From contig NW_026863766.1 of NCBI RefSeq assembly GCF_026571515.1, positions 62,001 through 126,000 on the forward strand: a stretch of DNA of 64,000 nt. The letters run 5' to 3'. Positions 22,957 to 54,300 of this stretch are shown one piece after another. The position numbers and the translations under genes were made by a program. Origin of the DNA: Ruditapes philippinarum. Its lineage: Eukaryota. The notes beneath the pieces are model-generated. The model saw nothing but the letters and a program-made list of their open reading frames with translations, was not told the origin of the DNA and searched no databases. The number at the start of each line of letters is the position of its first letter. Positions within the stretch are counted from its first letter, which is position 1.

Positions 22957-24929
22957 CCGAACAGTGAGCACAGTTTTGATGGATGTATTAATTATTGTGT
23001 ATGTGCCCCAAAATATTTGACTATCTCACATTGTAATGGATTTACACTTGACCATTATATCATAGAAATAGCTAAGATTTATCATGTGTGTTAAACAGAA
23101 TCCTAGTGTGATCATTCTCTACAAAGACGTACGCACATGTACGATAGTGTATATATGTATTTCCATTCTATCAACTAGAATCATCCTACTATTAACGATT
23201 GATCTCCATCCAGGATAAACAACAAAGCAGTCTTATAGATGTATATTTAATGTGAAAAGAAATTGTATAGATTTGGTACCCATTATAAGCTTATACTTTC
23301 AAAGAATGTTTTTATCAGCGAAGTAATATTGTGTTCCCTTTTACTTTTTTACGTGCAAATATATTTTTTCATCTACTGCACATTGCTGAATATATGTAAT
23401 GTCCTTGTACTGTATCTTTAATATAGGACGAACATAATTAAACAATATGTAATCATTTGTTGAGCACCAAAAGTGTAAAAATATGTCTAGCTTTTACAGT
23501 TATTCTAAAAGATATTTTGTTTTTAAAGACATAGAGACCTAATTCTAAAAGCCAATCAATTATTATAACAAATTGTTTATACTGAAATATGCATTTGTGT
23601 ATATCAAAGCTAATATAAGATCATAAAATAAGAAGATGCAAAACACATTCCTATACTATAAATGTATATGCCATATACGATGCTAAATATAATGATTTAG
23701 ATAAAAAAATATCTACGCCAGTCTTTGAATATTTCATAAGTTACAGTCTTGATTGTTTATATGTACTATCACGCATAGCCATTATCAGTAGCTCTGAGGC
23801 ATCATATCTAAAGGCCAAACTATTTCATCCCTGTATATAATATAACCCAAAGCTAAAGCATAAATGCGTCATTTTTGCCCATGTAAACCTAAATTGTGAA
23901 TTGTGTATATAATTTATTTATTAGAATATTGTGATATGTCATATTTTATGCTAGTAATACTGTCGATGACACCCCATGTTGTTATTTTTATTGATGATTA
24001 AAGTATTTACCATGCGTTAAATGACTGAAAAATAAATATTTTAGTTTGGAAATGTGCTTGTTTTTCATTCATTGTTAAGGAATAAGTACTAAATAATGTT
24101 TATAAAACCAAATGGTGGACGATGGAAATTCGTTCTTAAACTGGTTTATTGCGCAAGGCAAGAGTAGAAGAGTTATTGCATTTTTGTGCATGTGATACCT
24201 AGAGAAACACGAGGACGTATCTGCAGGTCGAGGGATTTAATATGTACGAGGGTTACTGCAGTTGCCAATTCACGGAAAACTCGCATTAGCGTTATCAACG
24301 TATATAGTACAAATCTGGTCGGGTATATCCGTGCTTTCTAAAAGTGGTGCCGTTATGCTTTTAACTTGCGAATACAAAGTGTTGTAAATGAAAATATAAG
24401 GTTGTCATTGCAGTGATTCTTTTTGAATAGCGCCCTGAGTCATGCATTTTTATAAAAAGTGCGTCAACGAGTTGTGTTCTTGTAATGTTATCCAATGAAC
24501 GCAAGTGTTTAGCTATGATAATCAAATTACGATACATTTAATTTCACATTAATACCTATGTTTCTATATATAGTAAAAACAATCTAGGGTATTTCAAGGT
24601 CATTTTGGCAAGATTAAGGTCATAATGCAACCTTGGCCGCCTTGCTACTCGTCATTATTTTTCCATAATGGGAGTGTGAATGAGCACACGTGCAGAATGA
24701 CGTAATCAACTCTCAATGACTTTTAAAATGGCTGCTTTCGTTGAACGAACTGTTGTCACTTGCACATGAGATGACATAATCAGTCGCATTCAACAAAGCT
24801 TAACATTGAATAATCATAATTTCAAGAAAAAATTCAGTAACTCTACCAAATTCAAAACATGACTCTCAGAAATTCCGAAAATGATTTTAGATTGATGGTA
24901 GAAAAAAAAGATTGGGGGCATTTAGAGCT

Positions 24930-25788: not shown

Positions 25789-25884
25789 TACTTGGTTGCT
25801 GCTCGCCATTATGCGATAATGGTCCGAAGATGTGCATACTGGCTTGAGGGTCATTATTGCCTAATGGCGAGCAGCAACCAAGTA
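25789..25884. repeat. Palindromic MITE-like core (longer version at ~49589-49721)
   Basis: tacttggttgctgctcgccatta ... taatggcgagcagcaaccaagta are exact reverse complements. Confidence 0.75.
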
Positions 25885-28040
25885 TTTACCTCTTATAAAT
25901 TTTAAAGTGGTTTCTATTTTATTTCATACAGATTTTTTTCGGTAGCGTTACATTATATTATATAATTGAATAATTAGTAACAATCAAAACTTTCTTTTCA
26001 ACCAACCTTAAATTTTATAACTTGCATTCATAATATATTCAGAAATTTTTCCACCCTTATTCTGCTGTTGAATGTTTATTATACTATGAATTGCTTATAG
26101 AATAATAATTATTCCATTTTCATGCATTCTGCAACCTGTGTTTGTTTATAAGGATACTAGCAGTTAAACATTACACAGACCAAGACGCCAAATGCATTGT
26201 CAGTACATATTAATGCTAATATCAAATCAGTTTATTTATAATGTTTAAAATCAGATTTAAAGTCTTCTCATGTACAGACTCAAGCAAACCGAGTCTGCAA
26301 TTTTCATGTAATTTTGCTATTTGACTGCTTCCGAGGGATCACTTTTTTCCAGATATTTCTGAAACGAACAATATTGTCATTTTATAGAGTTCACTCGATG
26401 CCTGAAACAGCTTTGTATTCAAGAACTTTGCAAAATGTGTAGCAGGGCTTTATAATCAATAGAAACACTGCCTTGATATCATAAACAACAATTTAATAGC
26501 GGTGTTCTCGGGGGAATTCCATCTAAAATGATTTATTACAAACGCAAAAAGTCTTCCAGTGTGTTCATTTCAAGGTTAAACGGTGTAAAGAGGCCAGTTT
26601 ATCGTTTATCAGGCTTAACCAACATAAAATTGTGCTAAATGAATAATTTTATTGAACAAAAGGCAAATGCCTGTGAGTACATTTACATAAACATATAATA
26701 CAAGGGTTTTATTTTTACAAAATAATCAGTAGCGGTCCAATTCTATATAAATCGTCATAAAAATATGTAATCGTAAAAAATATCAATCATCACTGCATGC
26801 AATAGAAAAATGAAATTTATTTTATCAAGTATGTTAAGTATTATCATGAAATAGTAAATATCATACTCATGACCTAATCGTATTATTTTGCAAACTATAA
26901 GAGGCAATTGGTGAAACAACAGTATCAATCAATAAAAATGTAAATGCGTTTATGTAAATGTTCTCATTTAAAATATTTAATTTGACTTTTGGAGTATTTT
27001 CAAACAGTTAGACATCGTCAATAAGATTTTGTTTTGCTAAATACAACATCATACAGTTTGAATTATTTTTCGTTTTTACCTGCTTAAATCAAAAACATGT
27101 TAGTAACGTTTAATATATTTTTAGACATACTAATACTATGATTTACTTTGATTGGATTTGTATCAGTACAGATGTTTTTAAAACATTTGGTTACATATAA
27201 ATTGAAATTTGTTTTTTTCAAGGAAGCTCACAATGAAGACGGATTCAACATTCCAGTAACACAGCAATACAGTCAAAATAAGACTACCATTCAATATTTT
27301 TTTGCTGTTAAATTACCTGATTAGAAATTTATTCACCTAACATGTAAAATCATATTTTTTCACAACAGAAATATACATAAATCATCAACAGATATGACAT
27401 TCACCGTCCAGCATATTTACTCACTTTAAGGTGTATGCTACAATTATCATATATACTTTAATTGGAATGAATTAGCTTTCAATTAAATTGTCCATATTAA
27501 AAGTTTCATTGAACTTGTACATTAAGTTTAACCATGACAGTTCTATGTACCCTTCATGTATATGATACTTAAATTTACAATAAAACAATTATTGAGAATC
27601 ATGTTCTTTTATCAAGAAATCGACAAACACACAATACACGTATATTTTATTTGAAAAAAAAATGTTTTATTGATTTATAGAGCATATTTATATAAAATAT
27701 AAATACTTACCTCTCAAAATATCTGAAATGGACGTGTCCTTCTTCGAATGCGGACAAAACCATTTATCATTTTAGGATAAGTATTGGCTTAACAGCTAAC
27801 AGTGCACAACATTCAAGCTGATCATTGTCCGCACTGATCGCAGGTTTAATGAAAATTAGAAGTCAAAAATAAATAAACAAGTTTGTTAACGATTTACTTA
27901 AACAGTATCTGTTATTTACAACCTACGTTATTAAGTACATACATGTATATATAGAGGATATTGAATGGGTGTAAGTTCAATACTGAATTTATTGCACGAG
28001 TTGAATAAACTTACATTTTCCCCTTTTTCTTTTATTTCAG

Positions 28041-34000: not shown

Positions 34001-37000
34001 GCACCTTTTTTCGTGCATTTCCAACTGCAGAATCACGAGCACGCATTTAAAGCCCGGGCCCGAGTTTTTCCGCGTTCTTCTATAGATATAAATGCACAAG
34101 TATATAGGTACATTTGCACTATACTAACATAAAAAGTAAATGTCAAAATTGGTATTATCGCGTTCCCTATCAGTATTAAGCATTCTTGTGTCATGCTTTT
34201 ACGTGCTAGTGCGATATCGTTTGACAGTTATTTTTGATGATAAAATTACCGGGGCCGTCATTACATAAAGCTATTTTATATTGAGCCCCGAGTTATGCTT
34301 ATTAAAAAAAATCTACCCGTCAATGCATTTTTTCTTCTCCGTTAGAGTATACCTGTGTGCGCAGTTCTTATGCAAGACTTTTGAGATATTTGTACATCCT
34401 TACCAAACTTGTTGAAAATTAAACGAAATAACTCCAGATATAGTTCCGAAATAAAAGAAAATGTTTGCTACTACAGACGAAAAAAATGTTGCTATTCAAA
34501 TCACTAACATAAAAATATCATGCTTTATAATTGATCAGTTTCGCCAGTAACATTACAATTTTGACACATAATATTGTTGTATACAGGTCGACCTCGACCA
34601 GATGGAAGACGGGTTTTTCTGTCGTCACTTGTAGTCAGGCCATTAAATGTTTTGGATCATACTCGTAACGCGGTAGCACCGCCATATCAGAGAAAAAGGC
34701 CGAAATTGGTAAGATTTATTAAACGCCATCAAATGGTTTACTCAGATTGATGTAAACATAGAAATATAGTGTTGTTATCGATCAAATGAAGCCGTTTAGA
34801 CTTTAAACTTAAAGTACAAAAATTATATTATTAAACATTTGAAATACAGTAGCGTAAATAATTTCTTTTTTGAAAATTTCATTTGATCAAAAGAAATATA
34901 TCGTTGTACTTTTTTTTTCATTATTTGCGTTTGTGTAACAAGGAGTGTCTCCATCATATCAATTTAACAATGAGAATGTAAGTATAAACATATTTTATCA
35001 GTTTACATGCCTGTTACATGTGGGGTTCCCCAGGGCAGCATCCTGGGTCCTCTTTTATTTTGTGCTATGTAAATGACATGAGAATTAGTATAGATCAAGA
35101 ATGTAAACTTATTCTATATGCCGATGACAGTGCAATTCTTTTGCTCACAAAAATCCAAGTATTATTTCTCAAAAACTTGGACAAACACTAGAGTCTTGTT
35201 CATCTTGGCTTGTAGATAACAAATTGTCACTTCATCTAGGAAAGACTGAATGTCTTATGTTTGGTTCCAAACGTAAACTGAAACAAGTTAAAGAGTTTAA
35301 AATTGTTTGTAATGGACATACTATTGAATCCACAAAATCTGTTAAATATCTAGGTTTAAATATTGATGATTCTTTGTCAGGTGAATCTATTATTAATTGT
35401 ATTCTTACAAAGGTGAATTCACGTCTTAAGATTTTGTATAGGCAAGCAAATGCTTTAGATTTTAGGACTACAAAATATTTATGCTCAGCACTATTACAAT
35501 GTCACCTTGATTATGCATGTTCTTCTTGGTACCTGAGCCTGAACAAGTGTTTTAGAAATAAGCTTCAAATTTGTCAAAATAAAATTGTTAGATTTATACA
35601 CGGTATGAGACCTAGAGATAGTGTCAATAATGATATTCTTGCTAATATGTCTTTACTAAATGTAGAAAACAGAAATAAGCAATTACATCTTAATCATGTT
35701 TTTAAAATTGTTAATAACCAGTGCCCTTCATATATGATAGAAAAGTCTATACCTGTTAGAGACATTCATTCTTATTCAACTCGGTCGAATCAGTACAATT
35801 TTAGGGTCCCAAGAAGTTATGGGAAAGATAATGTAACTTTTTTTCAAAAAGCAATTAATGATTGGAATTCCTTGCCAACATGCATAAAAAAATTGATAAG
35901 ATAGGAGATTTCAAAAGCTCAGTGAAGGCCCATTTACTAGAACAGTTAGGTTAGGAAATCATAATTAAATCCACTAGTATGACTAGAAATTGATCTCATT
36001 TTTATTGTTTTCCTTTTAGCAAAGTTAATGGAAATACTAAAGTTTGATATTTTACGTAAATGACATCTTCCAGTTTCCAAAGTTTTGTATTTTCAATGTT
36101 TTTGTGTTTTATATTGTATATTATAGTAATATATCATAGTAAGTATATATCCAAGGACCCCATTGGAAATAAGCCTTCGGGCTTTCATGGGCAATCCGAG
36201 GTTATTGCACACTACTCTATACATGTTTCCACTTACGTCCTCACATTTTATTAAACTAGTAATTTGATATCTAGTCATAGGAAGGAAAGAGATTTAGATT
36301 TTGTTTTTAGTTATAATATTTTATTATTTAATGAGCCTTCTGTGATATCTATGTTTGACAAACTTCCGAAATATTTTATTACAATTGTGTCATCCGTTTT
36401 ATATAAAATGCTTAAGTGTTTGTATTATGTATACATGTATATGTGTTTTAACCTGAATAAATATCTATCTATCTAATATCTAACAATTGAATCAAAGAAA
36501 AAGACATTAATAGTTTATCAATTCATTAGACCAGATTAGAGGTTAAATATATTTAAACGCGTATAATAAAATGATTTCTTTTCTGTATTATAAAAAAAAA
36601 ACAATATCGAGATTTTAAATGTTATGCAAACATAATAATCCAAAAATCTTGTAAATATATATTTTTCATTTTAAAGGACCAGTTTGTGATAGTGTTCACT
36701 ATTTTTATTCGTTACAGAGACCACCAGGGATAGGATTACCCGACACATCGGTAATGATGCACGATTTGAACCCGGAAGAAATGATGGCTCCAAGGTATGC
36801 CACACCTTACAACCCACAGGACGATTCAACGTACAACTACAGTTTTCAGACAACGCTTTAAATGTGATTATTATTGAGGTAAAGTTAACGTGACATTCCA
36901 TTGTGCGTTTATTCATATATATCAAATATTTGTTATGATTTAACTTACTGATGCTGTTGCGTAGCTTTCTTGCTGTTGCATAGGTGACTTCAGTGAAACA

Positions 37001-38437
37001 TATATATCCCGCCTATAGACAACTTATTCAACTGATTCCCCAATGTCACTGTGTTAGCATATTTCAGTCTTGTATTCTAATTTGGATTTTATTTGCGAGC
37101 CTAACAATTTTGAAGATGGAAAGGTAATAAAGATGACTGATACAAAATTTACATATGATAATTCCTATATTGTATGTTTATTATTATAGCCGTAGTCGGC
37201 ATACAAACAATTTGACATAAAATTATCAGCTAAAAATGTTTAAACTTTTTACTATTTATCTCCATTTTTAGGCAGGTGATCTCAAAATTGCTGGTCTACT
37301 ACAATGTGAAGGCATTTCTAGTACCCGGTAGAACATTTAAATACAGCAATAAAACAATAAATAAATCAAGGGTGAGTAAATTTTATCAAATAAACTTTTC
37401 GAAAATCAGTAACATGATTAAATTCATGACAGCAGAATAGATTCTCAAGATTTTAAATCTGTTGGTTGTAAAACCAAAATTTAAAGTAGAGATGAATAAC
37501 ATAAAACGACGTTGGCTTTTGCAGGCTTTTAAAAATACATAAAAACCGCCATGTAAAAGCTAATGGCATTAATGCAAAACAAAAAAGAAATCGAAAACAG
37601 GAAACATTCTTACGTGATATAATTATGTTTTAATTTATTTATTTTATTTATTTATTACAGACGCCTGTGTTTCTTGAAAAGTTTTCTATTCAAGAAATAA
37701 CCTGAGAAGAGGTATCAGATGGGTCTGCTCTCGAATGCCAGGTAAGATTGTGTTACTTTCTTAAATTTTAATAAACATTAGTCTTAAATGGTACATTGGT
37801 AATATAACACAAATGATACATTGTTAATATCAAACAAAGATACATCTGTAATATTACACTCAAGTTATACATTTAAATTAACAGCGCATTACATTCTGAC
37901 ATTTGTTTGCTTATTTTTGCAACTAAATTAGCTGACGAGAAGCAAACTCTGAAGATTACAAGACATTTAAAATGTATGACAAGGCAGAAATACAGGAAAA
38001 AAAAGTTTAAAAGATGAGAAATTATTTCCTTCTTGCAATTGCGTAATGAATTTTTTATCAAAAATTAAATTAAACTTGATTTAATTGCATGTGATAAAAA
38101 ATCAATTCATATGACTTTTCAGAAGCGCATTAGCTATTTTATCTGACCTGCTTTTATAAATGATGAAATGAATTAAGTAGCCAGTCATGTGATAACGTTT
38201 AACGTAAAAAAAACATATGACTTCAATTCTACTAATATTCTTACATTGAACTCATTATAAATGTGTCTACGTTTACGTCCTCCATACACAATTTGAATAA
38301 AATATTTCTATTCATTTTTATCGTAGGTTTATTCCTCGAATCACATTACTCGTAGACTTCTGGTGGATATATAAGATATAGATAAATACGAAAATGGACT
38401 TGTAGATTTGATAATACTCCCTCATAGTGTTAACAGG
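28041..38437 (+). pseudogene. Duplicated synaptotagmin-like pseudogene (first 9 located exons, no C2B)
   Basis: Same exons as copy 1 but with CAA>TAA at 30976-30978, AGA>TGA at 37703-37705, 1 bp deletions in the linker exon, internal deletions in two C2A exons (~37297 and ~38367), and loss of the three C2B exons. Confidence 0.88.
34975..36481 (+). mobile_element. 5'-truncated CR1/L2-group LINE (RT C-terminal half plus 3' UTR)
   Basis: GVPQGSILGPLLF (~35022), YVNDM, LYADDS (~35113), continuing into ORF 35224-35904 (LSLHLGKTECLMF..SVKYLGLNID..LDYACSSW); ends aataaa-(tatc)n; absent from the copy-1 intron near 19180. Confidence 0.9.
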
Positions 38438-38649
38438 GTAATATTTCTTTAATTTCTTTTGTCAAACAATTCATCTATCTCAGGTTTTTAGGTGTGTTTT
38501 AACATAACATACATATTAAACCATATGGTAATGTTTATGACAAATTTGATGTTATGCATACTTTTATTTAAAACATTCTTACATTAACTTCAAACTACAA
38601 ATTGAACCGTTTCACACAATGTCGAAACCTAAACATGAACATACATACA

Positions 38650-38800
38650 TGAACCGGTGACGGATATGGCTTTTTCCCGGCAAATTTGCCCGCCCACACA
38701 AATCAAGGAAAGTAGTTGTTTTTTTCGCTTTTAGCAAACTTCGGATATAACGAACGGTATTTTTATGTCCCATTGAGTTCGTTATAAGCGGAGTCGACTG
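38650..38800. mobile_element. One end of a Tc1/mariner-pogo-like MITE
   Basis: Ends ...gttcgttataagcggagtcgactg|TA (CAGT terminus on the minus strand, TA target), with internal ttcggatataacgaac / gttcgttataagcgg inverted motif; other end missing. Confidence 0.55.
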
Positions 38801-38848
38801 TAATTATAAATTCAAGGAAAAATTCAGTAACTCTACCAAATTCAAAAC

Positions 38849-39275
38849 CACAGGGACTTAGCACAGTGTTGGGATAGTGTAAAAAAGTAATTCTAAAAAA
38901 AAATATATACCTTATATATAATATATAGACAAGGGGTTGAACTCGCCAAATCGGCCGATTGTCACTAGTCCAGTACATGTCAAAATTACAAAGTCATTTT
39001 TACGTAAATCATATAAAGCTTTATATCAAATTGCAGGTAAATGACATCACTAGACGTTGACAATAACATTATTGTCCCCACTTAAACCGTTTTTGAACAA
39101 CAAACCGATATTTCAGATGGAAAATCGTATTTTTGCTAGGTCGGACACGACCGTGTAACCAGTCCCGACTCAATTTTCTACGTGTAAAAACGCAATTCCA
39201 AACAACGACAGTGTATCATCCCGCAATAAATCGATAAAACACATTCAAAGAAACAACTTACCGCTAAATATTGAT
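38849..39275 (+). repeat. Left TIR (~427 bp)
   Basis: Reverse complement of 48821-49250 with about 11 differences by manual comparison. Confidence 0.95.
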
Positions 39276-39529
39276 TTTCAAAATGTTTTATAACAGCTGA
39301 AAACAACTAATTTCTTGTACGTAAAAATGAAAGTTGTAATCCGAGGGTAATCCGCATCCAGTGGTTATCACGTGACCGATTTGCAACGGATAATTTCATT
39401 GGTTGATTTCTGGTTCCCTGTCCTGCAAGGTAGGTTTCTACGAAGCTGCAATAGAAAAATGGTATAAGTATCAGATAAATGTAAATGTAAACAAATGTAC
39501 ATTGCTGGTTTACGAAAACGTAAATAAAA

Positions 39530-41248
39530 TTGTCTTTAAACCAAAAACAAAGGGATGCTTTAAGCATTGCAAGTGCTGGACACACCCTTCTTTTATTAGG
39601 ATCGGCTGGGACGGGTAAAAGCCATCCTATTACTGAAATTTGTAAGGAATTGAATGAAAAAGGTAAACAAGTGAAACTGACATGCAGCACGGGCATAGCA
39701 TGTGCAGTGTACCCCACCCATTTAAAACCAATGACAATACACAAATTCACTGGGATAGATGATGGAAGGCATGATCCGAATGAAATTGTGTCAGTATTGA
39801 AAAACAATGCCAAGTGTGACAAGATTATTGATGCAATTATGACAACAGATGTATTAATAGTAGATGAATGTTCTATGATAAGTAAACGTACATTCGAGTC
39901 CATAAAAAAGGTCTGTCAAATTAAAAATCCATGTAAAATATTTGGAGGAATTCAAATTATATTCAGTGGTGACTTTTTTCAGCTCCCACCTGTACCGAAC
40001 AAAAGGTACAATGACGATGGCACATATTGTTTCTTAAGTGAGTTCTTTCAAACTTGTTTCTCTCATACAGTAACATTAACTCAAAATGTGCGGCAGGATG
40101 AGGAACTTTTTGTTAAAGTTATATCTGATATATATCAAGGCAATTTAACTGAATGTGTCATAGAATTTATGAACAGTGTCAATAAATCTTTACCGGGTGG
40201 CAGCCTTAAATTATTTTCAACCAATTTATTAGTGGATACGTACAATCATCAGTGTTTACTGAATTCTCCTGGAGACTTGTTTGAATTCAAAGCAACATAC
40301 AATGGGAATGCAGCAGAACTGAAATCTTTGACAGTGCCTAAAACATTATGGTTGAAGCTTGAATGTCCAGTGATTTTGCTGCGAAATTTAAGTGACACAC
40401 TTGTGAATGGGTTGAGAGGAATATTGAAGTATGCTACTGAGACAAAACTGGCAGTGTACTTTCCCAGTTTACAAAAGACACAAACATTGCATAAAGAGTC
40501 ATTTACAGGTAAAACTAATATTTCATGTCAGAGCCTTTTCTGTTTTAATATTTAAATCAGTAATAACATATGTTTAAAACACATACATGCTAGTCTAAAG
40601 TAATTAGTAATTGGTTTGTGCACATACATGTTTTTTTCAAAAAAGTAAAAAATGTTGTTATTTTTATTTTCATTGAACAGTGTTTGATCCAAGGACAAAT
40701 TCAGATATTGCAAGCAGAATGCAGTTTCCTGTAAAACCAGCATTTGCATTAACAATTCATAAAGCACAGGGGATGACATTGCCTTGGTAAATATACATGT
40801 AGTTCATAAAAATATTTTCCTAAATGTATTTTACTTCCAAACAGTACTGTCTGTATACATTAGTAACTGTTACTATCTTATATAATTGAACTCAATATTT
40901 AAATTTTTATTAGTAATAAAAAACAATAATAAGTCATTTGAAATAGACAATGGAAATATTGCATCTTCCTCATGTAAAGTAAAATAGTGAGATTAATATA
41001 ACTAAGAGCATGGTTTTCTATTTATTACATACAAAATACATATTTTTCAGGCTTGAAGCGGACTGCAATGATATATTTAAGACAGGTCAGCTAGGGGTTG
41101 CGATTTCTAGGGTTAAGTCTTCAAAGGGGTTGCGTGTAATCAATTTTCACCCGAGGTACATATTTAGCCCACCTGCTGCTATCAAACAGATTTCGGATAT
41201 GAAAAGCAATGGAATGATTGAAGACTTTAGCTGTTGTAGAATGATAAG
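39530..41248 (+). CDS. PIF1-family (SF1B) DNA helicase, exons 1-3, transposon-borne
   Basis: Exons 39530-40508, 40681-40786, 41051-41248, GT-AG and in phase. Motifs: GSAGTGKS, STGIA, TIHKF, IVDECSMI, FGGIQIIFSGDFFQLPPV, LTQNVRQ, PVILLRNL..LVNGLRG, RMQFPV..AFALTIHKAQGMTL, GQLGVAISRV..GL. The start reads aaaatTGTCT (ATG apparently broken by an extra T). Confidence 0.93.
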
Positions 41249-42169
41249 GTGATAATGTTTTCAAGTTAATAAGAATCACAACCAATCCAAGCAATGAAAG
41301 AATTGTTTCTTCCTAATGTTATGATACATATTTAGCTTGATTATTTAATGGAAAGTACTTTTGTCTTACTCACCTTAGTGTCATCACTGGCAAAACACTT
41401 GCTCAACCACTGGAGTTGTGCTTATTTAACTTCCAGCAATACCATTTTTTCTAGATGACATTTGTTGTCCAAAATCTAGTATTCTTGCATGGATTATTAC
41501 TGAATAATTCATTTGAGAACTCCTTGATTTAACTTTTTGTTACTGTTCACTTTTACAATGTAGTAATGTTATTCTGGATCTTCACACTTATTGATTCCAG
41601 TATGTTAAATGTTGAGTACACTAATTAATTTCTATGTTGCTTTTATTTAACTGTCCAGCACCGAGAAAAGTGCAGCCTGCTGTCCCAAGACGGGTTTTAG
41701 TTTAAATTTGTTTTCATTGCTCTCGAAGGATCTCCTCTTTTCCAGAGAGTATGGGGGTGTCATAAGGCCTTGTTAAAATTTCTTTGTGGACCTATTAATC
41801 AATCAATTATTTCTTGTCTTTAATTTCCTTAAGTATCATTTTTGTGATTATCCTGTCTGTGCTCTGCCTTGCACCCTGTCCTGTTTTGTTTGGGGTCCTC
41901 CAGGGCTCCTTGTTGCTGGGTTGTTTGGGGGTTGAACTAATTGAACGCCGCCTTTCCATGTTGATCTTGTTTAATTATCATATTTCAGCAGGATCAGTAT
42001 CCAAAATGTTAGTGTCACTTTTACATTATCTCTCATAAACATACTCAAATCAAACTGTCTGCTTTTTATGATTATAGTTTTGTTGTTTTCATTGCTTCCG
42101 TGGGATCATCTCTATTCCAGATTTTTATGAAACTTCACAAATTGTCCTAGATGTCATATTTATATTTAA

Positions 42170-45100
42170 TTACAGTCGGATGACCTTTACATCACTTGAA
42201 GTACAGCTTATTGATGGCCTTTTTCGTAAAGGCTGGTTTAAATTTAAATGGCATGGTTCATATTTGACTCTTGCATTAGTGGCAGCATTTGATTTTTTGA
42301 GACCATGTTTTGGCCTACAAGAATACTATTTATTGCTCGCTGATACTGTAGTGCACTAGGATTTGAATTTGCTCCATGATAAGTGGATCTCTGCTGGTTG
42401 AAAACATTCTCGATAACATCAGAGTTGACCAGTCCTGGAGTGATATACATTATAGATGATTTATTTAGCACTGCTCTGCAAAGTGCAATAAAAACCCAAA
42501 ATACATGACTGTACATCTTCTGCGCATTGTTGAGATAAGAGTTTTTTCCTTTTTTTTTTTCTGAAATTTCCGTGCTATTCATAACTAAATTGTCCCACTT
42601 GGAAAAACCATTCAGCAACAGCATGTAAAGTTCCAAGTCTGTTATCATCTAACACTTTAACAGGTCTCATATCACGAAAAATATCAATTAATTTTGATGT
42701 ATTTTCAAGCAGTTCTATAACTCCATTTAATACTTCACCTTTTTGACCGAGATTCTTTTGATACAATTTCATTGAATGCAACATTTCAGAATTTAACACA
42801 TCTTCTGCTAAACGATTTCGCATTTTCAATTGTGAATCAAGATGAAAATGTTCTCTAGATAATTTTTTATGAGTTTGTAGAGCATTTTGCTGGTCCCAGT
42901 TGAAAAAGTCAATAAACATTTGCCACTGGATAGTGTAAGAACTTGGTAAAGTTAGAATTCTTGTACTTTTTGGATGAATTCCACTTTTAAGAATGTTGTT
43001 TCTCAGTTTTTTTACCACATGTAAAAAGTCCATTAAAAATATTATGTCATTTGATGTGCAAGGACTTCTTGCTATATAACTATGTGACTTATCTCCCAAG
43101 CACATGTGCATTAATGAACGGTTAGCTTGAGCCCCATCCATACAGGTATAAAGAACTGTAAATCCTGCTGATCTGAATAAGTAGACTGCTTTCCAGAAAA
43201 TACTAAATAGCTCAGATGCCTGTACACAGTTGGTTATAAAATATGCCAATGGAAAACTAAAACCAATTCCAAGGAAAAGTAATTGGAGTGCATATTTGCC
43301 TAATTTCTTTTCTTTAGACCCTTGTTTTAAAGCATGGCAGGTGTCTCCCTCCTTCCCATAATCAGTAAAACCAGATATTTCAACAACATCACCATATTTA
43401 TCAATCTGAATATCAGTTTGAATGGCCATTTCATCAAATATGACACCCCCATATCTCTCACCCTCTGGTATATTTTGCCTGTTTGCCTCAGCATACATCC
43501 ATTGGAAAACAACATCTTCAAATCCTGGTTTTTGCTTTATAGCATTTTTATATAATATTAGCAGTGATTGTGATGGTAGTACTAATAACTTGCTTGAATA
43601 TAAGAGGCCATAGCAATGAGGACTTCTGTTATACATTTGCATGCATACACCAATAAATTTCTTTGACCATCTGCGACCTTTTGGGTGTCTGCCAACATTT
43701 TTGGCTTGTTCAACAAGTAATTCTATCATATTTTCATCTGCTCGTGGAAAAAGATTCCTCACTTGCTTGATTAGGGACTCAGGACCAGGAGCATGTGGTT
43801 CAGGCTGGTTTTCTTTATTGTCAGACTGAGAAAAGGTCATTTTCTGACAGGTTCTACAAACAAATGTATGGCTATTTAAGGAAATTACCTTCTCACACAT
43901 TACAGACCTCATTGATCTGACAGCTGTATTATCAGGTCTTTTCCACAAGTCTAGAGTTATGGTATCGGCTTACATTTATGGACTTGGTAATTTCTAGGCC
44001 GCAGCAAAGTTGAATCTTGTCAACAATGGAAAAAACTACTTTTATACCCTTTTCACTTGCATGAAATGTTCCATCAATATATGCTTTGGATAAATTGACT
44101 TTTTTCCCTGCAATTTCAAGTTCCCACATGCCATTCATATGTAAAGTTATTGATTTTGTTACACCATTACCATAACTTAAGTAGCCACTTTGTATTTCAC
44201 AAATAATCTCTTCAGGGCTTATCTTCTTTATATAATAATTGTCTGGTTGACATTTAGTAATACATGTAGTTGTGCATCTTAAATCAGATACAGAACATGT
44301 ATCAATAGGGTCAATGCAAAGACCTCTGTAATATGTCTTGAGTTGTGTGCCAACCTTTTTTCTTACATTTTTAACACCTTGAATTAAAGCTTTCAAATGT
44401 TCCACAAATATCATTGAGCCAGGTATTGAAGAGCCTTTTCCAGATTCTAGACATTCAAACTTGAAAGTGTCCAAGAGCATATTTATGTCTACTTCTCCAT
44501 CTGGGACAGGTGTCAGTCTTGACAGAATCCTATCAAATAATTGAGTAAAAAATTAGATGTTGATTTTTTTATACACCATAACAAAATACAGTTGAACCTG
44601 TGATAGCGTTCATTTGAATTAAACACAATTATATGGGAATACATGTAGTAACATTAAGTTTTGCATTTCTGTATTTCAAATTGTTATGTATAGTAGCAAT
44701 TTTAAAGGCCCATCATGCTCCGGAAATGCTTTTTTAATTCTCACAAAGTTTTTCATTTCTTGCGTCCTATTATAGTTTATAAAATGTCATTCATTGGCCA
44801 ATATGCATATAAATCAAAATACTACTTTATTTAAATGTAAATACTTTTATGACAATATGGGTGATAAGGCTTCTCAAAAACCATTAATATCAATCTTATG
44901 AAACACCTGATTTCTCTTTCTATATATTTAGTAAAAACTCTTTCATTTCCAAAGCATTATGTGCCTTTAAACTTTTTTTTAATGAATGTAGGAATTGACC
45001 CACAGATTAACTTCATCAACTGCATTACACAGGTTTAACTGTTTGACCATGTTTAAAGTGGAGAAAAATTGTTTATATCAAAAATAGCATACCCTGTAAA

Positions 45101-48100
45101 GTAACTATAAGAAATACATTAGAAATTCATATTTTTTTCCTATCTGAATTCAGTATAAATGGTTGTACATTGTAGTTTAACTGGATTTAAACCAGTTTGT
45201 AAATAATTTCTATATTGTCATACATTTATATATTAACAATCTTCATCTGAAAAGAGCATTTTATATTCCTGAAACCTTTATTTATTCAGAAGACATAAAT
45301 AGAATTTTAAAAAAATTATACATGTATATTTGTCATATTTTAGTTAAGCATGTCACAATATGAAATAACTTTCACCTGTATAAAATATAGCTATACACAA
45401 CATGCCTCCAGATGTTTCATGCAAATACAGTGCATTTTTAACTTAAGATATGATATGGTAGATGTTATTTCCTTAGCTATTCGCCAAAAGTTATTTTCTT
45501 TAAAGGCACATTATGCTGTAGAAATGCTTTTCATTTTAAGAATTTTTTTGTGTGTGTAATATTAGGTCCAAAAAATAACTAACATTTTTTTTTGCTGTTT
45601 TGAACCACCTTTTGCTGTTTTGGCATAGTTATTATTAATTTTTTTTGTATGGAAGTCAAAATGCACTGTGTTTACATTTTACTACTTTTATTACATTCAA
45701 ATAATGATTTTGTTAAATATAGGCAGATTATGTATAGCTTTATACACCTTTAATAGATTAATAATACATAGAAATCATAATCAGATAGTTAAAAAAAGCA
45801 TGCATAATTACATGCATTGATGCTCTGGTAATCTAAACCATGAATTCAAATTCAGCTGATATTGTCAATTTGGCTGACAAAAATTGAATCAAACTATGTA
45901 TACATTATTTCTGGGGATAAATCTTCATGTTATATAAGCTATGGTTCAGTTAAAAAGATCAGTAGTATTTCTCAAAAATGATATGGATTTGAAATATTAC
46001 AAAATTTTTGGTACCATTTTTAATGACAAATGCAGCATATTTGATATTTCACAAATATAATTACCAGAGCAACAATACATAGATATTGATACAATTCAAT
46101 TATTAGTTCTTTATTAATTACAATATCTTATGTTCATTATATATTCATTCCAGTAATGAAACAGAGCAACTGCTAATACCAACACCAGTGAAAGCAACAA
46201 GCACAAGTATTCTCTTAGACACTACTAGCGAAGAAATGGAACTTGAGGATGACTTCAATGATATACTTGCTTCAATTGATAGTGATGAACAAGAGGTATT
46301 ACAGTTTGAAATTCACAATAGATTCATCATGAAGAATATGCTTGCAGAAATTGCTTTCAAAAAACCATTTGGAACTTCTCAGCCAAAATGTAATCTTATA
46401 TATTATCACAACTTCATCCTGAAAACCTAAAACTAGTGACTTTTGTAAAAAGATTATTCTTAACATGTTCAAATATTTTCAAAGAATTAAATATGGACAG
46501 TTTTCAACCTGGTACTTCTATACCAGAGAGTGTATTGGCAATTTTTTTTAAAAAAATGTATGAATATACACTTGATGTCCAATATACAATGGATTGTCTC
46601 AGCTTATTTAATATGGGAACAGATAATTTGTTTGAAGAAGAACACAAAATGGTTTGTTACATGATTGTGGAATATATTAGAGACTTTATACTAACACAAA
46701 GACTTGAATTACTACAAACACAAGGAATGAATGTTAATAGAAGGTTTGTTACAGATGCTTCCCGGTCAAGAATTCGCTATGTTGCAGGTTACTGTGTAGC
46801 AAAGCTAAGAAAAAAATATGTGCAAGTATTACAATCTAATATGTTTACTAAATCTAAAACATCACAAACAAAATTTAAAGAAGCTAAAAATACTCTTCTT
46901 ATTCTTAACTCTTTCAAAGAAGAAGAACATTATTTACATCAGGTGACATCTGAACCAGACTCCCTCATAGACACTGAAAGAAAACAAAATGTAAAACGTG
47001 GTCTTACCAATGTAACGGATAGTATGTTCAAATTTTTCTTGACTTTAACTGATTTGTGTTTGGCAAAGCTAATAAATGAAAATTTGATAAAATATGGCAA
47101 ATCAATGTTTAACAATTGTTTGGAGCATGTGCTTAGTGAAAAAGGTTTATTTGAACAATTTTCACATATGGTTATTAATAAATTGAAAGAGGAGACAGTA
47201 GAAGAATTTTCTTTAAACCAAGAACATATGATATTAACAGAACTTGTCGACTCTTTGGTACTTACAACTGCCCAGATATGCAGCATATACAATGAAATTA
47301 TTAATAAATATTTTATGGTTTTATTTGCCCAGTTCTGCCGAGATATCAAAGGAGCTTTTCATATTATGAAAACAATGGCTCACAGGAAGCAAATAAAAGT
47401 GTCAAAATCTTCGGAGCATACAAAGCAGAAAAAAAGGCTACTGAAACTTCTACAGAAACAATACAATTAGTGGAGTCAACTACTGAAGTACAACCCACAG
47501 TAACTGTTCAACCCAGTCCAGAGCCTGAACCCCAACCAGGGTCATCAAGTTTGACAAGTGATCTCTGTAAAAAATGTCAAAAGTCAGAAGGAAATCAATG
47601 GATTCTATTTGATTCTTGTAATTATTGGTTTCACAGAAAATGTGCTGGTTTGCATAATGCAAAAAAAATGGAAAAATATTCAAAGGAAGGAACTGAATGG
47701 AACTGTCCCGAATGTGATTGAAAATTGTATTGAAAAAACTCTATAACTTATCCAAATTTTTACATAATATAATAATGCTTACCTATATGAATACATGAAA
47801 TTGTCTCAAAAAAGGTACAAACCCTTGAGAAGTTATTGAAATACCAGCTTACACGCGAAAACTTAAACATTTTTAAGTTGTATAAGTTGCTTAATTATGC
47901 AAAAAAGCAAACCAGAGTTAAGGTTCTTGTACCAATCATTTTAGATAATTACAAGGAAGAAGCATATGAAGTTTCAATCCATTTCCTTCGGAGTCATGGA
48001 GATACCAGCTTATGCCAAAACACAAATCAGTTATAGGACTTTTCAAAATCATGTAACATAATCACAGAGAATAAGTGAAGTTTCAATCCACTCTCTTCAG

Positions 48101-48535
48101 TAGTTATGGAGATACCAGCTTACACGCAAAAACTTACCCAATAATTTCTAAGTCGAAAAAGGGGCATAAATATGCAAAAAAGCAAATCAGAGTTATGGTA
48201 CTGGTATCAATCATGTTAGATAATCACAGCATATGAACTTTCAATCCAATCCTTTTAGTAGCTATGGAGATACCAGCTTATATGAATAAACTTTATCATG
48301 GGGACGCCACTAAATGGGTTCTTTGAATAGTATACCTAAAAAAGGAGTTTCCAACTTTCCACACTGTTATTTATATTGATATAGGCCATATATACATGTA
48401 TATGCATAGAATCCTGCATAGAATCCTTTGAAATGCAATGTAAACAATGGACAATTCTTGTGTAAATTTAATGTGTCAAGTACTTTTAATGTCATTATTT
48501 CCACGGAACATACAATCTTACCAGTTTACAAGCAT
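42170..48535 (-). CDS. P-element/THAP9-type DDE transposase (frameshifted in this sequence), no THAP domain
   Basis: Main exon 44529-42170: GRRWS helix-turn-helix region, IFDEM (D1), CMDG..NR (D2), MDFLHVVKKLRNN (DxxH), KMRNRLAEDVL, NSDVIENVFNQQR (E); ends VKVIRL-TAA. Frameshifts near 43945, 42600-42500 and 42295. Putative first coding exon 48535-48522 (aaaATG CTT GTA AAC TG|gtaag) is phase-compatible with the acceptor at 44529. Confidence is higher for the main exon than for exon 1. Confidence 0.88.
46154..47721 (+). CDS. Putative terminal exon of the helicase gene: acidic linker, helical YVAGY/RGL domain, PHD finger (2 frameshifts)
   Basis: Acceptor ttcattccag|T AAT GAA is phase 2, matching donor AG|gtgat at 41248. 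It covers three consecutive ORF-track pieces (46188, 46436, 47470). PHD pattern CKKC..WILFDSC..WFHRKC..WNCPEC, third Cys replaced by F. Confidence 0.72.
47800..48310. repeat. Internally repetitive element (satellite-bearing MITE-like) inside the P element
   Basis: gataccagctta-type unit at ~47840, 48001, 48110, 48269, with aagtttcaatcca and agagttaaggttcttg subunits recurring. Confidence 0.65.
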
Positions 48536-48820
48536 TTTCGCTATGAATCAGGAACGAATTGTTGAAAAGCTGAAAAAATAAGTTGTTTTCACCAAAATAA
48601 TTACGGACTTTCAAAATTAGCGCTAAAATTCACGTGCCATGGAACCCGAATTCAGCATTGAAATAGATAGCTGAGCTGGGACACAGAATCGTCCAATCAA
48701 AAGGCGTCTTACAACCGGAGCCGAGTATTTATCTCGGACAAGAAACATGTCTTCAGCTGTTTATTTTCACGGAAGAGTGACAAAAAAAACCGAATGTTAC
48801 CTGTAATTGATTGGTTTTGG

Positions 48821-49250
48821 ATCAATATTTTAGCGGTAAGTTGTTTCTTTGAATGTGTTTTATCGATTTATTGCGAGATGATACACTGTCGTTGTTTGGA
48901 ATTGCGTTTTTACACGTAGAAAATTGAGTAGGGACTGGTTACACGGTCGTGTCCGACCTAGCAAAAATACGATTTTCCATCTGAAATATCGGTTTGTTTG
49001 TTCAAAAAACGGTTTAAGTGGGGACAATAATGTTATTGTCAACGTCTAGTGATGTCATTTACCTGCAATTTGATATATAGCTTTATATGATTTACGTAAA
49101 AATGACTGTGTAATTTTGACTTGTACTGGACTAGTGACAATCGGCCGATTTGGCGAGTTCAACCCCTTGTCTATATATTATATATAAGGTATATATATTT
49201 TTTTAGAATTACTTTTTTACACTATCCCAACACTGTGCTGGGTCCCTGTG
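48821..49250 (-). repeat. Right TIR (~430 bp)
   Basis: Reverse complement of 38849-39275. Confidence 0.95.
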
Positions 49251-51018
49251 TTCAAAACATGACTCTAAGAAATTCCGAAAATGATTTTAGATTGATGGTA
49301 GAAAAAATATTGGGGGCATTTAAAGCTTAGTTTGTGACTTGACATCAGAACCATTCTTGAAAGTACACAAATGCATAGAAAACTGGCACTAAACGTTATT
49401 CTCACAAATAAATATAAAGAGTATTTATCAATTTATACAAAAAAAACAACAACATTCTTTTATTTATTTTGTGTTATCATGTTCAGAGACAGATATATAT
49501 TTACATTGACAACTAAGGGCGACAACAAAGATTAGCGGCAATGTCTTAAAGCCGTATTTCCGGCAAAGGTATTCAAGACGTTGCTGCAAATACTTGGTTG
49601 CAGCTCGCCAATAGGCGATAATGGTCCGAAGATATGCATAATTGCCTGAGGGCCTCAGGCCCGAAGAACATTTTGGATACGATTGCCATTATTGCATTAT
49701 GGCGAGCAGCAACCAAGTATTTACCTCTAATTAATAAGTAAAAGTGGTTTCTATTTTATTTCCGACAGATTTTCTTCGGTAGCGTTACATTATATTATAT
49801 AATTGAATAATTAGTAATAATCAAAACTTTCTTTTCAACCAATCTTAAATTTTATAACTTACATTCATAGTATATTCAGAAAATTGTCCACCCTTATTTT
49901 ACTGTTGAATGTTTATTTTACTATGAATTGCTTATAAATATTATCATTAAACCAGTTTCATGCATTCTGCATCCTGTGTTTGTTTATAAAGATATTTGCA
50001 GTTACACATTACACCAGACCAAGAATCAAATGCATTATCAGTTCATATTAATCCAAAATATTACATCAATTTATTTATTATGTTTAAAATCGATTTTAAA
50101 GTCTTTACATGTACCAACTCAAGCAAACCGAGTCTGCAATTTCAATGTAAATTTGCTGTTTTACTGCTTCCGAGGGATAACATTTTTTCCAGAAATTTCT
50201 AAAACGAACAATATTCTCATTTTATAGAGTTCACTCGATGCCCTGAAAAAGCTTTGTATTCAAGAACTTTTGCAAAATGTGTAGCAGGGCTTTATAATCA
50301 ATAAAAACACTGCCTTGATATCATAAAACAATTTAATAGCGGTGTTCTCGGGGGAATTCCATCTAAAATGATTTATTACAAACGCAAAAAGTCTTCCAGT
50401 GTGTTCATTTCAAGGTTAAGCCCATTTTATCGTTTATTAGGCTTAACCAACACGTAAACTTGTGCTAAATGAATAATTTTTATTGAATAAAAGGCAAATG
50501 CCTGTGAGTACATATACATAAACATATAATACAAAGGTTTTATTTTTACAAAATAATCAGTAGCGGTCCAATTCTATATATAAATCGTCATACAAATATG
50601 CAATCGTAAAAAGATATCAATCATCACTGCATGCAATAGAAAATGAAATTTATTTTATCAAGTATGTTAAGTATTATCATGAAAATAGTAAATATCATAC
50701 TCAAGACCTAATCGTATTATTTTGCAAACTATAAGAGGCAATTGGTGAAAACAACAGTATCAATCAATAAAAATGTAAATGCGTTTATGTAAAATGTTCT
50801 CATTTAAGATATTTAATTTGACTTTTGGAGTATTTTCAAACAGTTAGACATCGTCAATAAGATTTATTTTTGCTAATACAACATCATACAGTTTTGAATT
50901 ATTTTTCGTTTTTACCTGCTTAAATCAAAACATGTTAGTAACGTTTAATATATTTTTTAGACATACTAAATACTATGATTTTACTTTTGATTGGATTTGT
51001 ATCCAGATGTTTTTTTTA

Positions 51019-51317
51019 AAACATTTGGTTACATATAAATTGAATTTGTTTTTTTCAAGGAAGCTCTCAATGAAGAAGGATTCAACATTCCAGTAACACA
51101 GCAATACAGTCAAAATAAGACTACCATTCATATTGTTTTTGCTGTTAAATTATCTGATTAGAAATTTAACATTTGGTTTACTATATAAATTGAATTTGTT
51201 TTTTTTTCAAGGAAGCTCTCCATGAAGAAGGATTCAACATTCCAGTAACGAGCAATACAGTCAAAATAAGACTACCATTCAATATTGTTTTGCTGTTAAT
51301 TATCTGATTAGAAATTT
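51019..51317 (+). repeat. Local tandem duplication (~149 bp x2), single-copy in the paralogue at ~27181-27330
   Basis: aacatttggtt...tgattagaaattt occurs twice in tandem. Confidence 0.85.
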
Positions 51318-54300
51318 ATTCACCTTACATGTAAATTATATTTTTTCACAACAGAATTTCTTCATATAAACAGATATGAATTCACGGTCCAGCATATTTA
51401 CTCACTTTAAGGGGTATATGGTAAGATTATCATATTATTTTGAAATTGGAGTGAATGAGCTTTCAATTAATTTTGTATAAATTGTTCTATTAAGTTTCAT
51501 TGCACTTGTACATTTAAGTTTCAAACCATGACAGTTCTAAGTACCCTTCATGTATATGATACTTAATTTAGAATAAACGAATTTTTTAGAATCAAGTTCT
51601 TTTATTTAAGAAATCGACAACCACAATACAGTATATTTTATTTGAAAACAAAAAATGTATTTATTGATTTATAGAGATATTTATAAAAATATAAATAATT
51701 CCCTCTCCAAAATAATATTGAAATGGGTGTCTTTTTCCGAATAAAGACAAACCTTTCACCATTTTTGGATTAAGTATTGGTTAAAGCTAACAGTCACAAA
51801 TCCAAGCTGATCATTGTCTGCACTGATTCACAGGTTTTGAAAATTAGAAGTCAAAATAAATAAACAGGTTTTGTTACATATTTACTTAAACGATTGTTTT
51901 TAACAACTGCGCGTTATTAAGTACTGTAATATAGAGATATTGGAACTGAGTGTAAGTTCGAATACTAAATTTCTTGCGGAGTTGAATTTTTTTATTCAAC
52001 GAGTTCAATATACTTCAGTATGACTTACACAATTTTATATTCTATTTGATCAATACCAATAAAGACAGTTTAATTTTAATAGAGTTATTTTTTTGCAGCG
52101 GTCTAGTAGTGTACATTTAGCGCATCTTTACACTATGTTTGTTATTAACGCTATTTTCAGGTAAAATATTGCAGCCGTGCATTCATAATTACGTGAGTAG
52201 CAAAATCGGTTGGGTATGGATAGTTAGTAAATTGCTTAACCACGCTTTCATGACTCTGTCAATAACACAACTTTAAGTCACAACACAACTTTAAAATCAG
52301 AAAGCATAAAAATAAATTGCAAATTATAGGTTTGTTTTGCATGCAAGATTGAAATATATTTAACCATGCAACACCAGCTATTATATTTTCACTCGTAAAA
52401 ATATTGTATTTGATGTCCACTCAGTGAAATATATTTCGATCTTACATGCAAAACAAACACATATCATCTATATGACATGAACATAAAGGTTCATAGTCTT
52501 TGGTGTTATCAGTCATATACATAATTTTCAATTCTGATAATAAATGTTTTAAATGAGTTTGTTCCTTGTATATGTTTAAAGAACAAAGACTTTCACTGAC
52601 TGTTACAGTGTTTGCAATGTTGAAATACCTTATGAGATGTTTTATTTTCAAACTTTAATAAGGCTATTTAAATCTATCTTTTTATAAAGCAAATGTAATA
52701 TGTTTCTATAACTGGAAAATGTTTCCCTATTCTTTTGTGATAAGGTCTGCTTTGTGATACTCCTGCTTTGTGATTTTATTACTCTATTAAGACATATTGA
52801 AAACGCAAATCTGCGGACACAAAGAAAGAACCGCACTAATTACTTGATTTATTGTGTTCAAAACAACTTCTGAAACGTGTGACTAAACATAATAACACGA
52901 TGATTGCCGCTATCTCTTAAATATCACTTTTCATTGTGATTATTTGGTGGCACAGCAAACAATATTAATAGCGTAGGTGGCCCGCGCCGCTAGTAAACAT
53001 GATCGTCTCATACAACTTGTTGTTCCGTTTAGTAGCGTTGGCTGAAGTATTATATTACTCTTTCTTAATTTGCGTAATTACTCAATAAATAGTTTTTGTC
53101 AGCTGAATGACACTACCAGCTTTTTTAGGTGCTTCAGGGCATCAAATTAACTCGGTAAGCTTAAATTAACGCATTGCTTTCATTTTTATGGCATTTGTAT
53201 GGAAATGTGGATACAAATTTAAAGAAAGACAAGAAATCTAGTCTTAAAGAATTGTTTAACTAAAAAACTACACATATATACTGTGAAGTGTTTATCGATG
53301 TAAAGGATGTGTTTTTCATATGTGCGTCGTTAGCATTTGCAATCTTCTTACGAATGTCAATACAAACCACCTTATGGGTTTTGTCAAGGGCAGAGATTGA
53401 AATACGTGACTTCTGGAACGCTATTAAAACAAATTTAGTTTTGACCTATACAACACCTTTGTTTGCAATGACCACAGATATCAATGCGAAATGGTTTTAC
53501 ATATCTCCTGTAAAATTATTGAAACTGCACTTGTTGAATTTAATATATTTATATATACTTTCTCTTTTTCGTTCTTCAATAAAGATTCAATTATTGGTAC
53601 GGGTCTAAGTAGCTTTGTTTATTTTTGTCACCTAGGATGAATATACCAACGTTCATATATTTAAAATGAATGATTTTAAACATAGTATTAACTTTTGCTT
53701 TCGTTTAAGACAACAATATTCACCCATAAGTCAGTTTACAATTGTAAAAGAATGTCATCTGTTATTGTATCTTTTATATACTATGCATATGTATACATGT
53801 CTTGTTCTCTTCCGTTGTATGAAAATTATATATATATTTTGTAAATATGTTACGCTCCCCAAATTTGGGGGATATCCCAAATTTTTAATATCATTCATAT
53901 GTTCTATGCCTCACATCTTCTTAATACATAATTATATAGTCTTTTCGTGCATCCTTTATACTCCTATTTCTTTTATATTGCTATTTAAATATTTGTTTTC
54001 TTCTTTTTAAATATGTATGCCATTCTTTTTTTACGACTTACAATATGTATTTACTTAAGAGGGAAGCATTGTCAGTTCATTTGTGTTTAACTTATCCTTT
54101 TACTTCAGATGTACATGTGTTGCTAATTCTATAAACAGACAACATTTACAATTTAAAGACATTTATCTGTACATTGGTGAAATACAAGCATTCTCTATAA
54201 AACAGCAGCGTCTCTTGGGAAAACTACATCCTCAATTAATTATCAGCAGACAAAATATAGCGAGCAATAGCGCAAGAGTTTCTCAGCTTAGAGCCGTTAA

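Follow-up and report, generated by a model that had tools for sequence, protein, structure and literature searches.

A P-superfamily transposon of Ruditapes philippinarum with a transposase that lacks a C-terminal domain and a PIF1-PHD protein that carries a very probable, diverged counterpart of it

The window analyzed here is a 64,000-nucleotide stretch of the Ruditapes philippinarum genome (assembly GCF_026571515.1, contig NW_026863766.1, positions 62,001 to 126,000 of the forward strand). It holds a DNA transposon of the P superfamily in which pieces of a PIF1 helicase gene (plus strand, 39530-41248) are followed by a TNP-like transposase gene (minus strand, 44480 down to 42170) and by a plus-strand exon encoding a helical domain, here called X, and a PHD finger. 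The original prediction, made from the DNA letters, held that the transposase lacks the C-terminal domain (CTD) of the Drosophila P enzyme, that motifs of this domain sit instead on the helicase protein, and that the domain is thus supplied in trans by a subunit of the transpososome. The features of the X-PHD exon are as follows.

46154..47721, plus strand: very probably the last exon of the helicase gene, encoding an acidic linker, the X domain, a linker and a PHD finger; acceptor ttccAG/T at 46153/46154
46397..46398, plus strand: TA insertion, the first frameshift, private to the window copy (missing from all four other copies aligned)
46436..46732, plus strand: N-terminal helical sub-domain of X, residues 1-99, from the structural model; it runs collinear to the N-terminal region of separate CTD proteins encoded by a second P family (family B, below)
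46733..47395, plus strand: CTD-like sub-domain of X, residues 100-320
46778..46792, plus strand: YVAGY, counterpart of CTD motif 1, residues 115-119; the published motif-1 strings map to X-profile positions 106-116
46997..47005, plus strand: RGL, counterpart of CTD motif 2 (RGGL..PSD), residues 188-190; maps to X-profile positions 181-198
47429..47429, plus strand: extra A within a run of A, the second frameshift; missing from three of the four other copies and shared by contig C2131 (L003)
47566..47718, plus strand: PHD finger (Pfam PHD, 3.9e-07, above cut-off)

The open reading frame (ORF) at 46436-47470 (344 amino acids), the acidic stretch upstream of the motifs (~46220-46290), YVAGY and RGL all lie where the original prediction had put them, and the ORF is one piece of the longer exon. 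Four other copies of the element, 96-98% identical, were aligned to the window exon. Because these copies lack the TA, and mostly lack the extra A, the ancestral exon at 46154-47721 was a single ORF, which bears out the frameshift-corrected product named in the prediction. Matches to X numbered 83 in the window's genome, and 434 relatives were found at E<=0.001 among 1.84 billion representative proteins. The solved PHD fingers nearest to that of the window are those of TAF3, Pygopus, ALFIN-like, DIDO1 and MLL, and by its sequence the finger is a candidate histone reader.

The exon was placed in a gene model with the helicase pieces upstream; the transposase gene lies between these and the exon.

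39530..40555, plus strand: first large piece of PIF1-like helicase coding sequence, given by the limits of its ORF; it aligns in order with residues 1-312 of fused proteins
40680..40790, plus strand: probable small helicase exon with ..AFALTIHKAQGMTL.., approximate limits; its frame-0 translation bridges the two PIF1 pieces in fused proteins
41051..41248, plus strand: last exon of the PIF1 helicase domain; donor AAG/GTGATA at 41248/41249
41249..46153, plus strand: predicted intron of the helicase gene, 4,905 nt, holding the whole transposase gene antisense (splice-phase, RNA-contig and collinearity evidence)
42170..44480, minus strand: P-type (TNP-like) transposase without a CTD (Pfam PF21787, 8.6e-17, and PF21788, 1.2e-05; profile match to 6p5a_A)

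The large PIF1 piece belongs to the PIF1 family by its matches to Pfam PIF1 (2.6e-26) and Pif1_2B (1.3e-05). As the PIF1 ORF ends in AAG/GTGATA, its in-frame stop, TGA, is supplied by the first bases of the intron. Donor 41248/41249 and acceptor 46153/46154 share their phase, the codon being split after its second base. The same AG/GT-at-stop donor in the same phase was present in three of seven further paralogues tested (C1184, C9393 and C823), that is, in four of eight copies including that of the window, and a same-phase acceptor was present in seven of the eight.

Fused relatives point the same way. Among 20 long X relatives scanned, PIF1 or Pif1_2B lay upstream of X in 15 and a PHD finger followed X in 16; a transposase domain was found in none of the 20. 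NCBI models of the fused type include those for Pecten maximus, Argopecten irradians, Mytilus edulis and the acorn worm Glandiceps talaboti, and uninterrupted fused products of 872-1163 amino acids were found on contigs of 3-4.5 kb. Searched exon by exon, the window pieces were collinear with 11 fused proteins; PIF1 exon 2 was aligned to its final residues, and X begins about 100 residues further on. In a distant subfamily (contig C517; L038, G000:C517:4049-8998) PIF1, X and PHD are contiguous on one strand and are followed by a convergent transposase, and the antisense-in-intron layout is therefore not universal. In three probable RNA runs, contigs begin at 46154 (in two of the runs) or 46167, one of them (contig 7, run X1) apparently with 30 further letters that do not match the adjacent DNA, and depth is zero at 45700-46099 and 41300-41499, where a DNA run is even. 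The RNA origin of these runs is a guess, and their contigs do not display the 41248/46154 junction; both points weigh against taking expression as established. The splice from 41248 to 46154 in the window copy is accordingly given as predicted. The fused relatives, the collinear exons, the shared splice phase and C517 nonetheless uphold the claim that X and the PHD finger are part of a PIF1 helicase protein, and a single PIF1-X-PHD gene is considered highly probable. From this model it follows that in the window's subfamily the transposase lies antisense within the 4.9-kb last intron of the helicase gene.

As in the P superfamily, the transposase combines a TNP-like RNase H catalytic domain and a GTP-binding domain inserted in it (PF21787, PF21788 and 6p5a_A). 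A single transposase sequence found no match among PDB sequences by phmmer, and a profile of 40 sequences was required; this profile matched 6p5a_A, the Drosophila P transposase (E 2e-11), over three stretches in collinear order. The final stretch covers Drosophila residues 510-565 and reaches the border of RNase H domain and CTD. The Drosophila P CTD is given as residues 567-751 in a 2026 preprint (10.64898/2026.08.31.747927). The window protein ends in ..VKVIRL*, with its stop at 42170-42172 on the minus strand, and the intact paralogues end in ..KIKVIRK*, 80 amino acids past the catalytic Glu, so that the predicted ending without a CTD was found both in the window and in intact copies. The 116 transposase relatives, from bivalves and cnidarians and mostly of 770-810 amino acids, had neither CTD family (PF12596 or PF22824) listed for any member, and in four that were inspected the transposase ends 40-60 amino acids past the catalytic motif. 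A loose form of motif 1, Y[IVLC][AGS]G[YFW], had no match on the transposase strand of the element; it occurs once in the six frames of the 10.4-kb element, inside X, and twice in the 64-kb window. An extra transposase exon coding for a CTD was thus ruled out, since the transposase ends at the domain border, its relatives list no CTD family and motif 1 in the element lies only within X. The transposase family has no CTD.

At the other end of the enzyme, positions 3-73 of the transposase profile (alignment A4; window 43932-44480, minus strand) matched the winged helices of RFX5 (4.7e-05) and RFX1 (0.0016), and no THAP zinc finger, the usual P-superfamily feature, was matched by Pfam at the N-terminus. 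The window transposase is frameshifted near 43950, 42600 and 42300; as the extra bases at 43957 and 42603 are missing from contigs in three runs, part of the breaks may be peculiar to the window copy or to the assembly.

X is tightly linked with this transposase family. Ten paralogous loci were found in which X is 33-49% identical to that of the window. The order PIF1 (plus), transposase (minus), X-PHD (plus) is kept in seven of them, and the other three have PIF1 beside X without a transposase, X alone, or a cut by the contig end. Matches to PF21787 in the genome numbered 22, three of which belong to another family; X lies within 6 kb in 17 of the other 19. Transposase and X-PHD proteins (P0153, P0173, P0289 and P0009) are also filed at NCBI under bacterial bins (Sedimenticola and Candidatus Thiodiazotropha), and these entries are probably host bivalve DNA binned with symbiont genomes.

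Whether X is related to the P CTD was approached through structure, motifs and an intermediate family. The AlphaFold model of X is all-helical with a predicted local distance difference test score (pLDDT) of 88.2; two models were used, with scores of 88.2 and 93.4. In an exhaustive structural alignment against 48,161 chains, 6p5a_B ranked first for both models. This chain is residues 617-734 of the P transposase CTD, and the X match spans the whole resolved CTD, so that an all-helical fold that superposes on the solved Drosophila CTD was obtained.

Consensus motifs for three conserved helical regions of the CTD are printed in section 22 of the preprint 10.64898/2026.08.31.747927. These strings were scored against the X profile with 500 shuffles as control. 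All three motif-1 strings aligned to the YVAGY helix, with scores reached by 0 of 500 shuffles, and the TNP-type motif 2 (RGGL..PSD) aligned to the RGL site, with a score reached by 3 of 500. The claim that CTD-like motifs occur in order on X stands for motifs 1 and 2, which beat the shuffles; it did not hold for motif 3 or for the THAP9-type motif 2, as detailed below.

The intermediate is family B, a different and more THAP9-like P family that provides the three strongest PF21787 matches in the genome. Its transposases stop about 50 amino acids past the catalytic motif and have no CTD. On contig C9199 (L036), with ORFs at 3548-4573 (plus) and 5175-6663 (minus), a CTD-like ORF of 342 amino acids lies on the strand opposite the transposase, 600 bp apart, and carries near-canonical motifs (FYISGF, NRGGLKVPSD and LFLKVRGHA). 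The L036 ORF is 96% identical to R. philippinarum protein P0298. Eleven database relatives of the CTD-like ORF are stand-alone proteins of 200-367 amino acids, and 4 of the 11 list PF22824.3 (THAP9_C). The ORF was found beside the transposase and on the other strand on 6 of 13 contigs (C9199, C4936, C11798, C14003, C10316 and C664), convergent on three and divergent on three. The only PF21789 locus (L033) showed no CTD exon, and family B was taken as the bridge instead. Across 238 columns, hhalign aligned the X and family-B profiles at E 7.7e-4, and motif 1, motif 2 and the N-terminal sub-domains fell into register; as controls, the X and family-B profiles were each aligned to the transposase profile and gave E 0.31 and 0.32.

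A number of results weigh against this relationship. The hhalign link between X and family B is weak (probability 25%). The family-B profile found no Drosophila P match among PDB sequences, its only match being YoeB at E 0.11; locally run, the THAP9_C model matched none of eight family-B proteins, and Tnp_P_element_C matched one of the eight, below cut-off. For X itself, Pfam gave no family at E<=1, and neither Tnp_P_element_C (PF12596) nor any other CTD family was among the best 25 of 73 families matched by 44 X members. X profiles matched only PHD fingers, or nothing at E<=10, among PDB sequences. The profile match to Tnp_P_element_C or THAP9 that the original prediction had anticipated was thus not obtained. 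Foldseek against the PDB gave best E values of 0.12 and 0.24, and 6p5a was not among the matches listed; the anticipated structural similarity is accordingly seen in the first rank of 6p5a_B and not in Foldseek. The motif-3 strings gave scores that were reached by 52 of 500 shuffles, with an alignment in the wrong place, and by 81 of 500, and the THAP9-type motif 2 gave no alignment with the X profile.

Other searches bear less directly on the question. In the ESM Atlas, X scored at most 0.85, to unrelated helical repeat families, and P0281 gave no usable match. Genome scans with PF12596 and PF22824 gave no match; they say little, because their controls also matched nowhere. X does not have the usual position at the C-terminus of an RNase H-type transposase chain, since its coding sequence is on the other strand, in a fusion with PIF1 and PHD. 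Precomputed annotations assign PF27108 to 15 of 32 X-family proteins, and this model may describe the X domain already; no relevant literature was found on PF27108 or Tnp_P_element_C. Taken together, X is very probably a diverged homologue of the CTD. Neither of the two outcomes that the original prediction had named as its undoing was encountered: no further CTD exon was seen, and some structural similarity to the P CTD was found.

The preferred reading is that the stretch at 46436-47470 is the X domain of a PIF1-X-PHD protein, that residues 100-320 are a diverged CTD homologue, and that this domain would act docked in the transpososome; as a whole it is favored with moderate confidence. The split layout points to a two-protein transposition machine. 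From the position of X, its linkage with the transposase and the role of the CTD in Drosophila, we infer that X would act in trans as a subunit, and a contact between the transposase and the PIF1-X-PHD protein is predicted with it. A review (PMC7776569) locates the Drosophila CTD at a site flanked by one subunit's RNase H domain and the other subunit's GTP-binding domain, where it touches transposon and target DNA; it states that transposition is catalyzed by the full 87-kDa protein only, the 66-kDa form without the C-terminal third being a repressor. In the proposed mechanism, the CTD-like domain would dock at the position that the CTD occupies in the Drosophila complex, and the transpososome would in this way gain a 5'-3' helicase and a PHD finger that reads histones. 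The helicase could serve at the long staggered cut of P-type elements or in repair of the donor gap, and through the PHD finger the complex could be directed to marked chromatin.

Some evidence pulls the other way. According to the abstract of the preprint 10.64898/2026.08.31.747927, Drosophila and human enzymes without a CTD still excise and integrate, and loss of the CTD favors integration. A CTD supplied in trans may therefore not be essential, and the need for the CTD in transposition is disputed. In addition, both genes are frameshifted in the window copy.

The likeliest alternative, rather unlikely in itself, is that X is a true CTD homologue and no subunit of the transpososome, being either a relic of rearrangement or a regulator (a competitor or inhibitor), with PIF1-X-PHD working apart, e.g. 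in gap repair or replication of the element. The activity of CTD-truncated enzymes fits a regulatory rather than an essential role, and the family-B CTD gene, in both convergent and divergent arrangement, needs no fixed layout for co-expression. Against this stand the tight linkage of X and transposase (17 of 19), the intact ORFs kept in paralogues whose X domains are just 33-49% identical, which speak for a role in the element's own spread, and the location of the CTD within the complex, where it contacts both transposon and target DNA according to the review (PMC7776569). It is improbable that X is instead unrelated to the CTD and a helical accessory domain of a PIF1 helicase carried by the transposon, its likeness to the CTD being a common helical arrangement with two short chance motifs: the silence of Pfam and Foldseek would suit such a domain, and the first rank of 6p5a_B for both models, the shuffle controls and the register with family B speak for homology. 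Least probable is an X-PHD gene of its own that is not spliced to PIF1, with the fused proteins coming from other subfamilies or from wrong gene models, for which paralogues with long stand-alone X ORFs (392-522 amino acids, one with an ATG start), many database relatives of 400-560 amino acids without PIF1 and the undisplayed junction can be cited, against an exon that starts directly after the AG at 46153 with zero depth upstream in the three probable RNA runs, the lack of an upstream in-frame ATG ahead of the acidic stretch in the window copy, the phase shared by donors (4 of 8) and acceptors (7 of 8), collinearity with 11 fused proteins (some of them NCBI models of scallop, mussel and acorn worm origin), and the contiguous PIF1-X-PHD on C517.

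A wider form of the preferred two-protein reading is put forward tentatively, as a possibility less probable than the reading itself: that in marine invertebrates one entire branch of P elements has a split enzyme, in which the DNA-gripping CTD is no longer in the transposase and is now the docking module of a second subunit (stand-alone or on PIF1-PHD), the helicase would open the long staggered cut or drive long-tract repair of the donor gap, and the PHD finger would pick the integration sites.

The limits of the element were taken from other copies, which were found by a DNA search of the window's own 1.4-Gb genome.

38841..38848, no strand: left copy of the target site duplication, TTCAAAAC, 8 bp; the same octamer stands at both flanks and singly at an empty paralogous site
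38849..49250, no strand: whole P-superfamily DNA transposon, 10,402 bp (repeat limits in other copies)
38849..39275, no strand: left terminal inverted repeat, ~430 bp; query 2850-3276 pairs inverted with query 12822-13251 in several copies
48821..49250, no strand: right terminal inverted repeat (repeat limits in other copies and end analysis)
49251..49258, no strand: right copy of the target site duplication, TTCAAAAC
24811..24929, no strand: paralogous empty site in the same window, which holds TTCAAAAC once

The element begins with CACAGGGAC... and ends with its reverse complement. An 8-bp target duplication is a hallmark of the P superfamily, and this duplication together with terminal inverted repeats places the element there. 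The flanks of the element (36483-38651 and 49334-51988) are duplicated 12-24 kb upstream in the window at 19206-21432 and 25532-28006, with 83-88% identity, and the empty site at 24811-24929 comes from this duplication of the flanking DNA. A Helitron was ruled out by the inverted ends, the target duplication and the lack of a Rep domain; neither the pieces in the window nor any of the 20 fused relatives that were scanned showed a Rep/HUH endonuclease domain.

Within the element, a very high-copy short repeat lies at 41700-42100, between the helicase donor site and the 3' end of the transposase gene, where the summed contig depth in the DNA run is 94,000-475,000 against ~200 around it; smaller depth peaks were seen in the same run at 44700-44900 and 45500-45700. 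Among other copies, one that is 97% identical (G000:C11405:21972-29790) has its X-PHD part inverted relative to the rest and is either a rearranged copy or an assembly error. Another (G000:C15064:33466-34594) consists of little beyond the two inverted ends, and C11443:438413-444487 is internally deleted; the end-only and internally deleted copies look like non-autonomous derivatives of the element.

The window element shares with canonical P and THAP9-type transposons the 8-bp duplication, the inverted ends and a transposase whose RNase H fold has a GTP-binding domain inserted in it. It differs from them in its length of 10.4 kb, its ~430-bp inverted ends, its two genes with the transposase antisense in the partner's intron, and a transposase with an RFX-like winged helix in place of THAP and no CTD. 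X likewise resembles the CTD of Drosophila P and THAP9 (6P5A chain B 617-734; PF12596, PF22824) in being all-helical, in belonging to a P-superfamily element and in sharing, in order, the motifs Y-I/V-A/G-G-Y..K-L and R-G-(G)-L followed by three residues and S/T-D. Unlike that CTD, X lies outside the transposase: it belongs to a PIF1 helicase, where an acidic linker precedes it and a PHD finger follows. X is also the larger of the two, spanning ~210 residues for 118 aligned, with a further helical sub-domain at its N-terminus; no Pfam CTD model recognizes it, and motif 3 cannot be made out in it.

PIF/Harbinger (a transposase and a Myb/MADF-type DNA-binding protein) and RAG1L-RAG2L elements are considered to require a second protein of their own besides the DDE-type enzyme; the second protein of the window element differs in carrying a domain that is normally within the transposase, plus a helicase motor, and we know of no helicase subunit for either of these systems. 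With Helitrons and Helentrons, in which a Rep endonuclease is fused to a PIF1-type helicase, the element shares a transposon-borne PIF1-family helicase, and it differs in its inverted ends, 8-bp duplication and DDE-type transposase and in having no Rep/HUH domain. A separable C-terminal third is also known from the 66-kDa repressor and 87-kDa transposase of Drosophila P, where, according to the review PMC7776569, the presence of that third decides catalysis; Drosophila joins the module on by splicing inside a single gene (retention of intron 3 gives the 66-kDa form), whereas in the window it belongs to another gene on the other strand. No P-type element that has a PIF1 helicase or whose CTD is split off turned up in the literature searched, which did not cover Repbase and subscription journals. 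The CTD fold is called unique to THAP9 homologues in the preprint 10.64898/2026.08.31.747927, and molluscs are not listed among the CTD homologues in its section 17, though its supplementary alignments might hold some.

The arrangement described here explains thousands of gene models in bivalve genomes that are labeled 'uncharacterized PIF1-like' and 'PHD-type', and it accounts for some of the proteins filed under bacterial symbiont bins. A CTD that has been cut off the enzyme twice in one genome and kept beside the transposase would be a natural separation-of-function test. A partner that acts as a subunit would add a helicase and a histone reader to a DDE transpososome, which would bear on the 17-nt staggered cut of P elements and on the choice of insertion sites. 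If the wider form of the reading is true, this would be the first eukaryotic cut-and-paste DDE transposon with its own helicase motor and chromatin reader in the transpososome.

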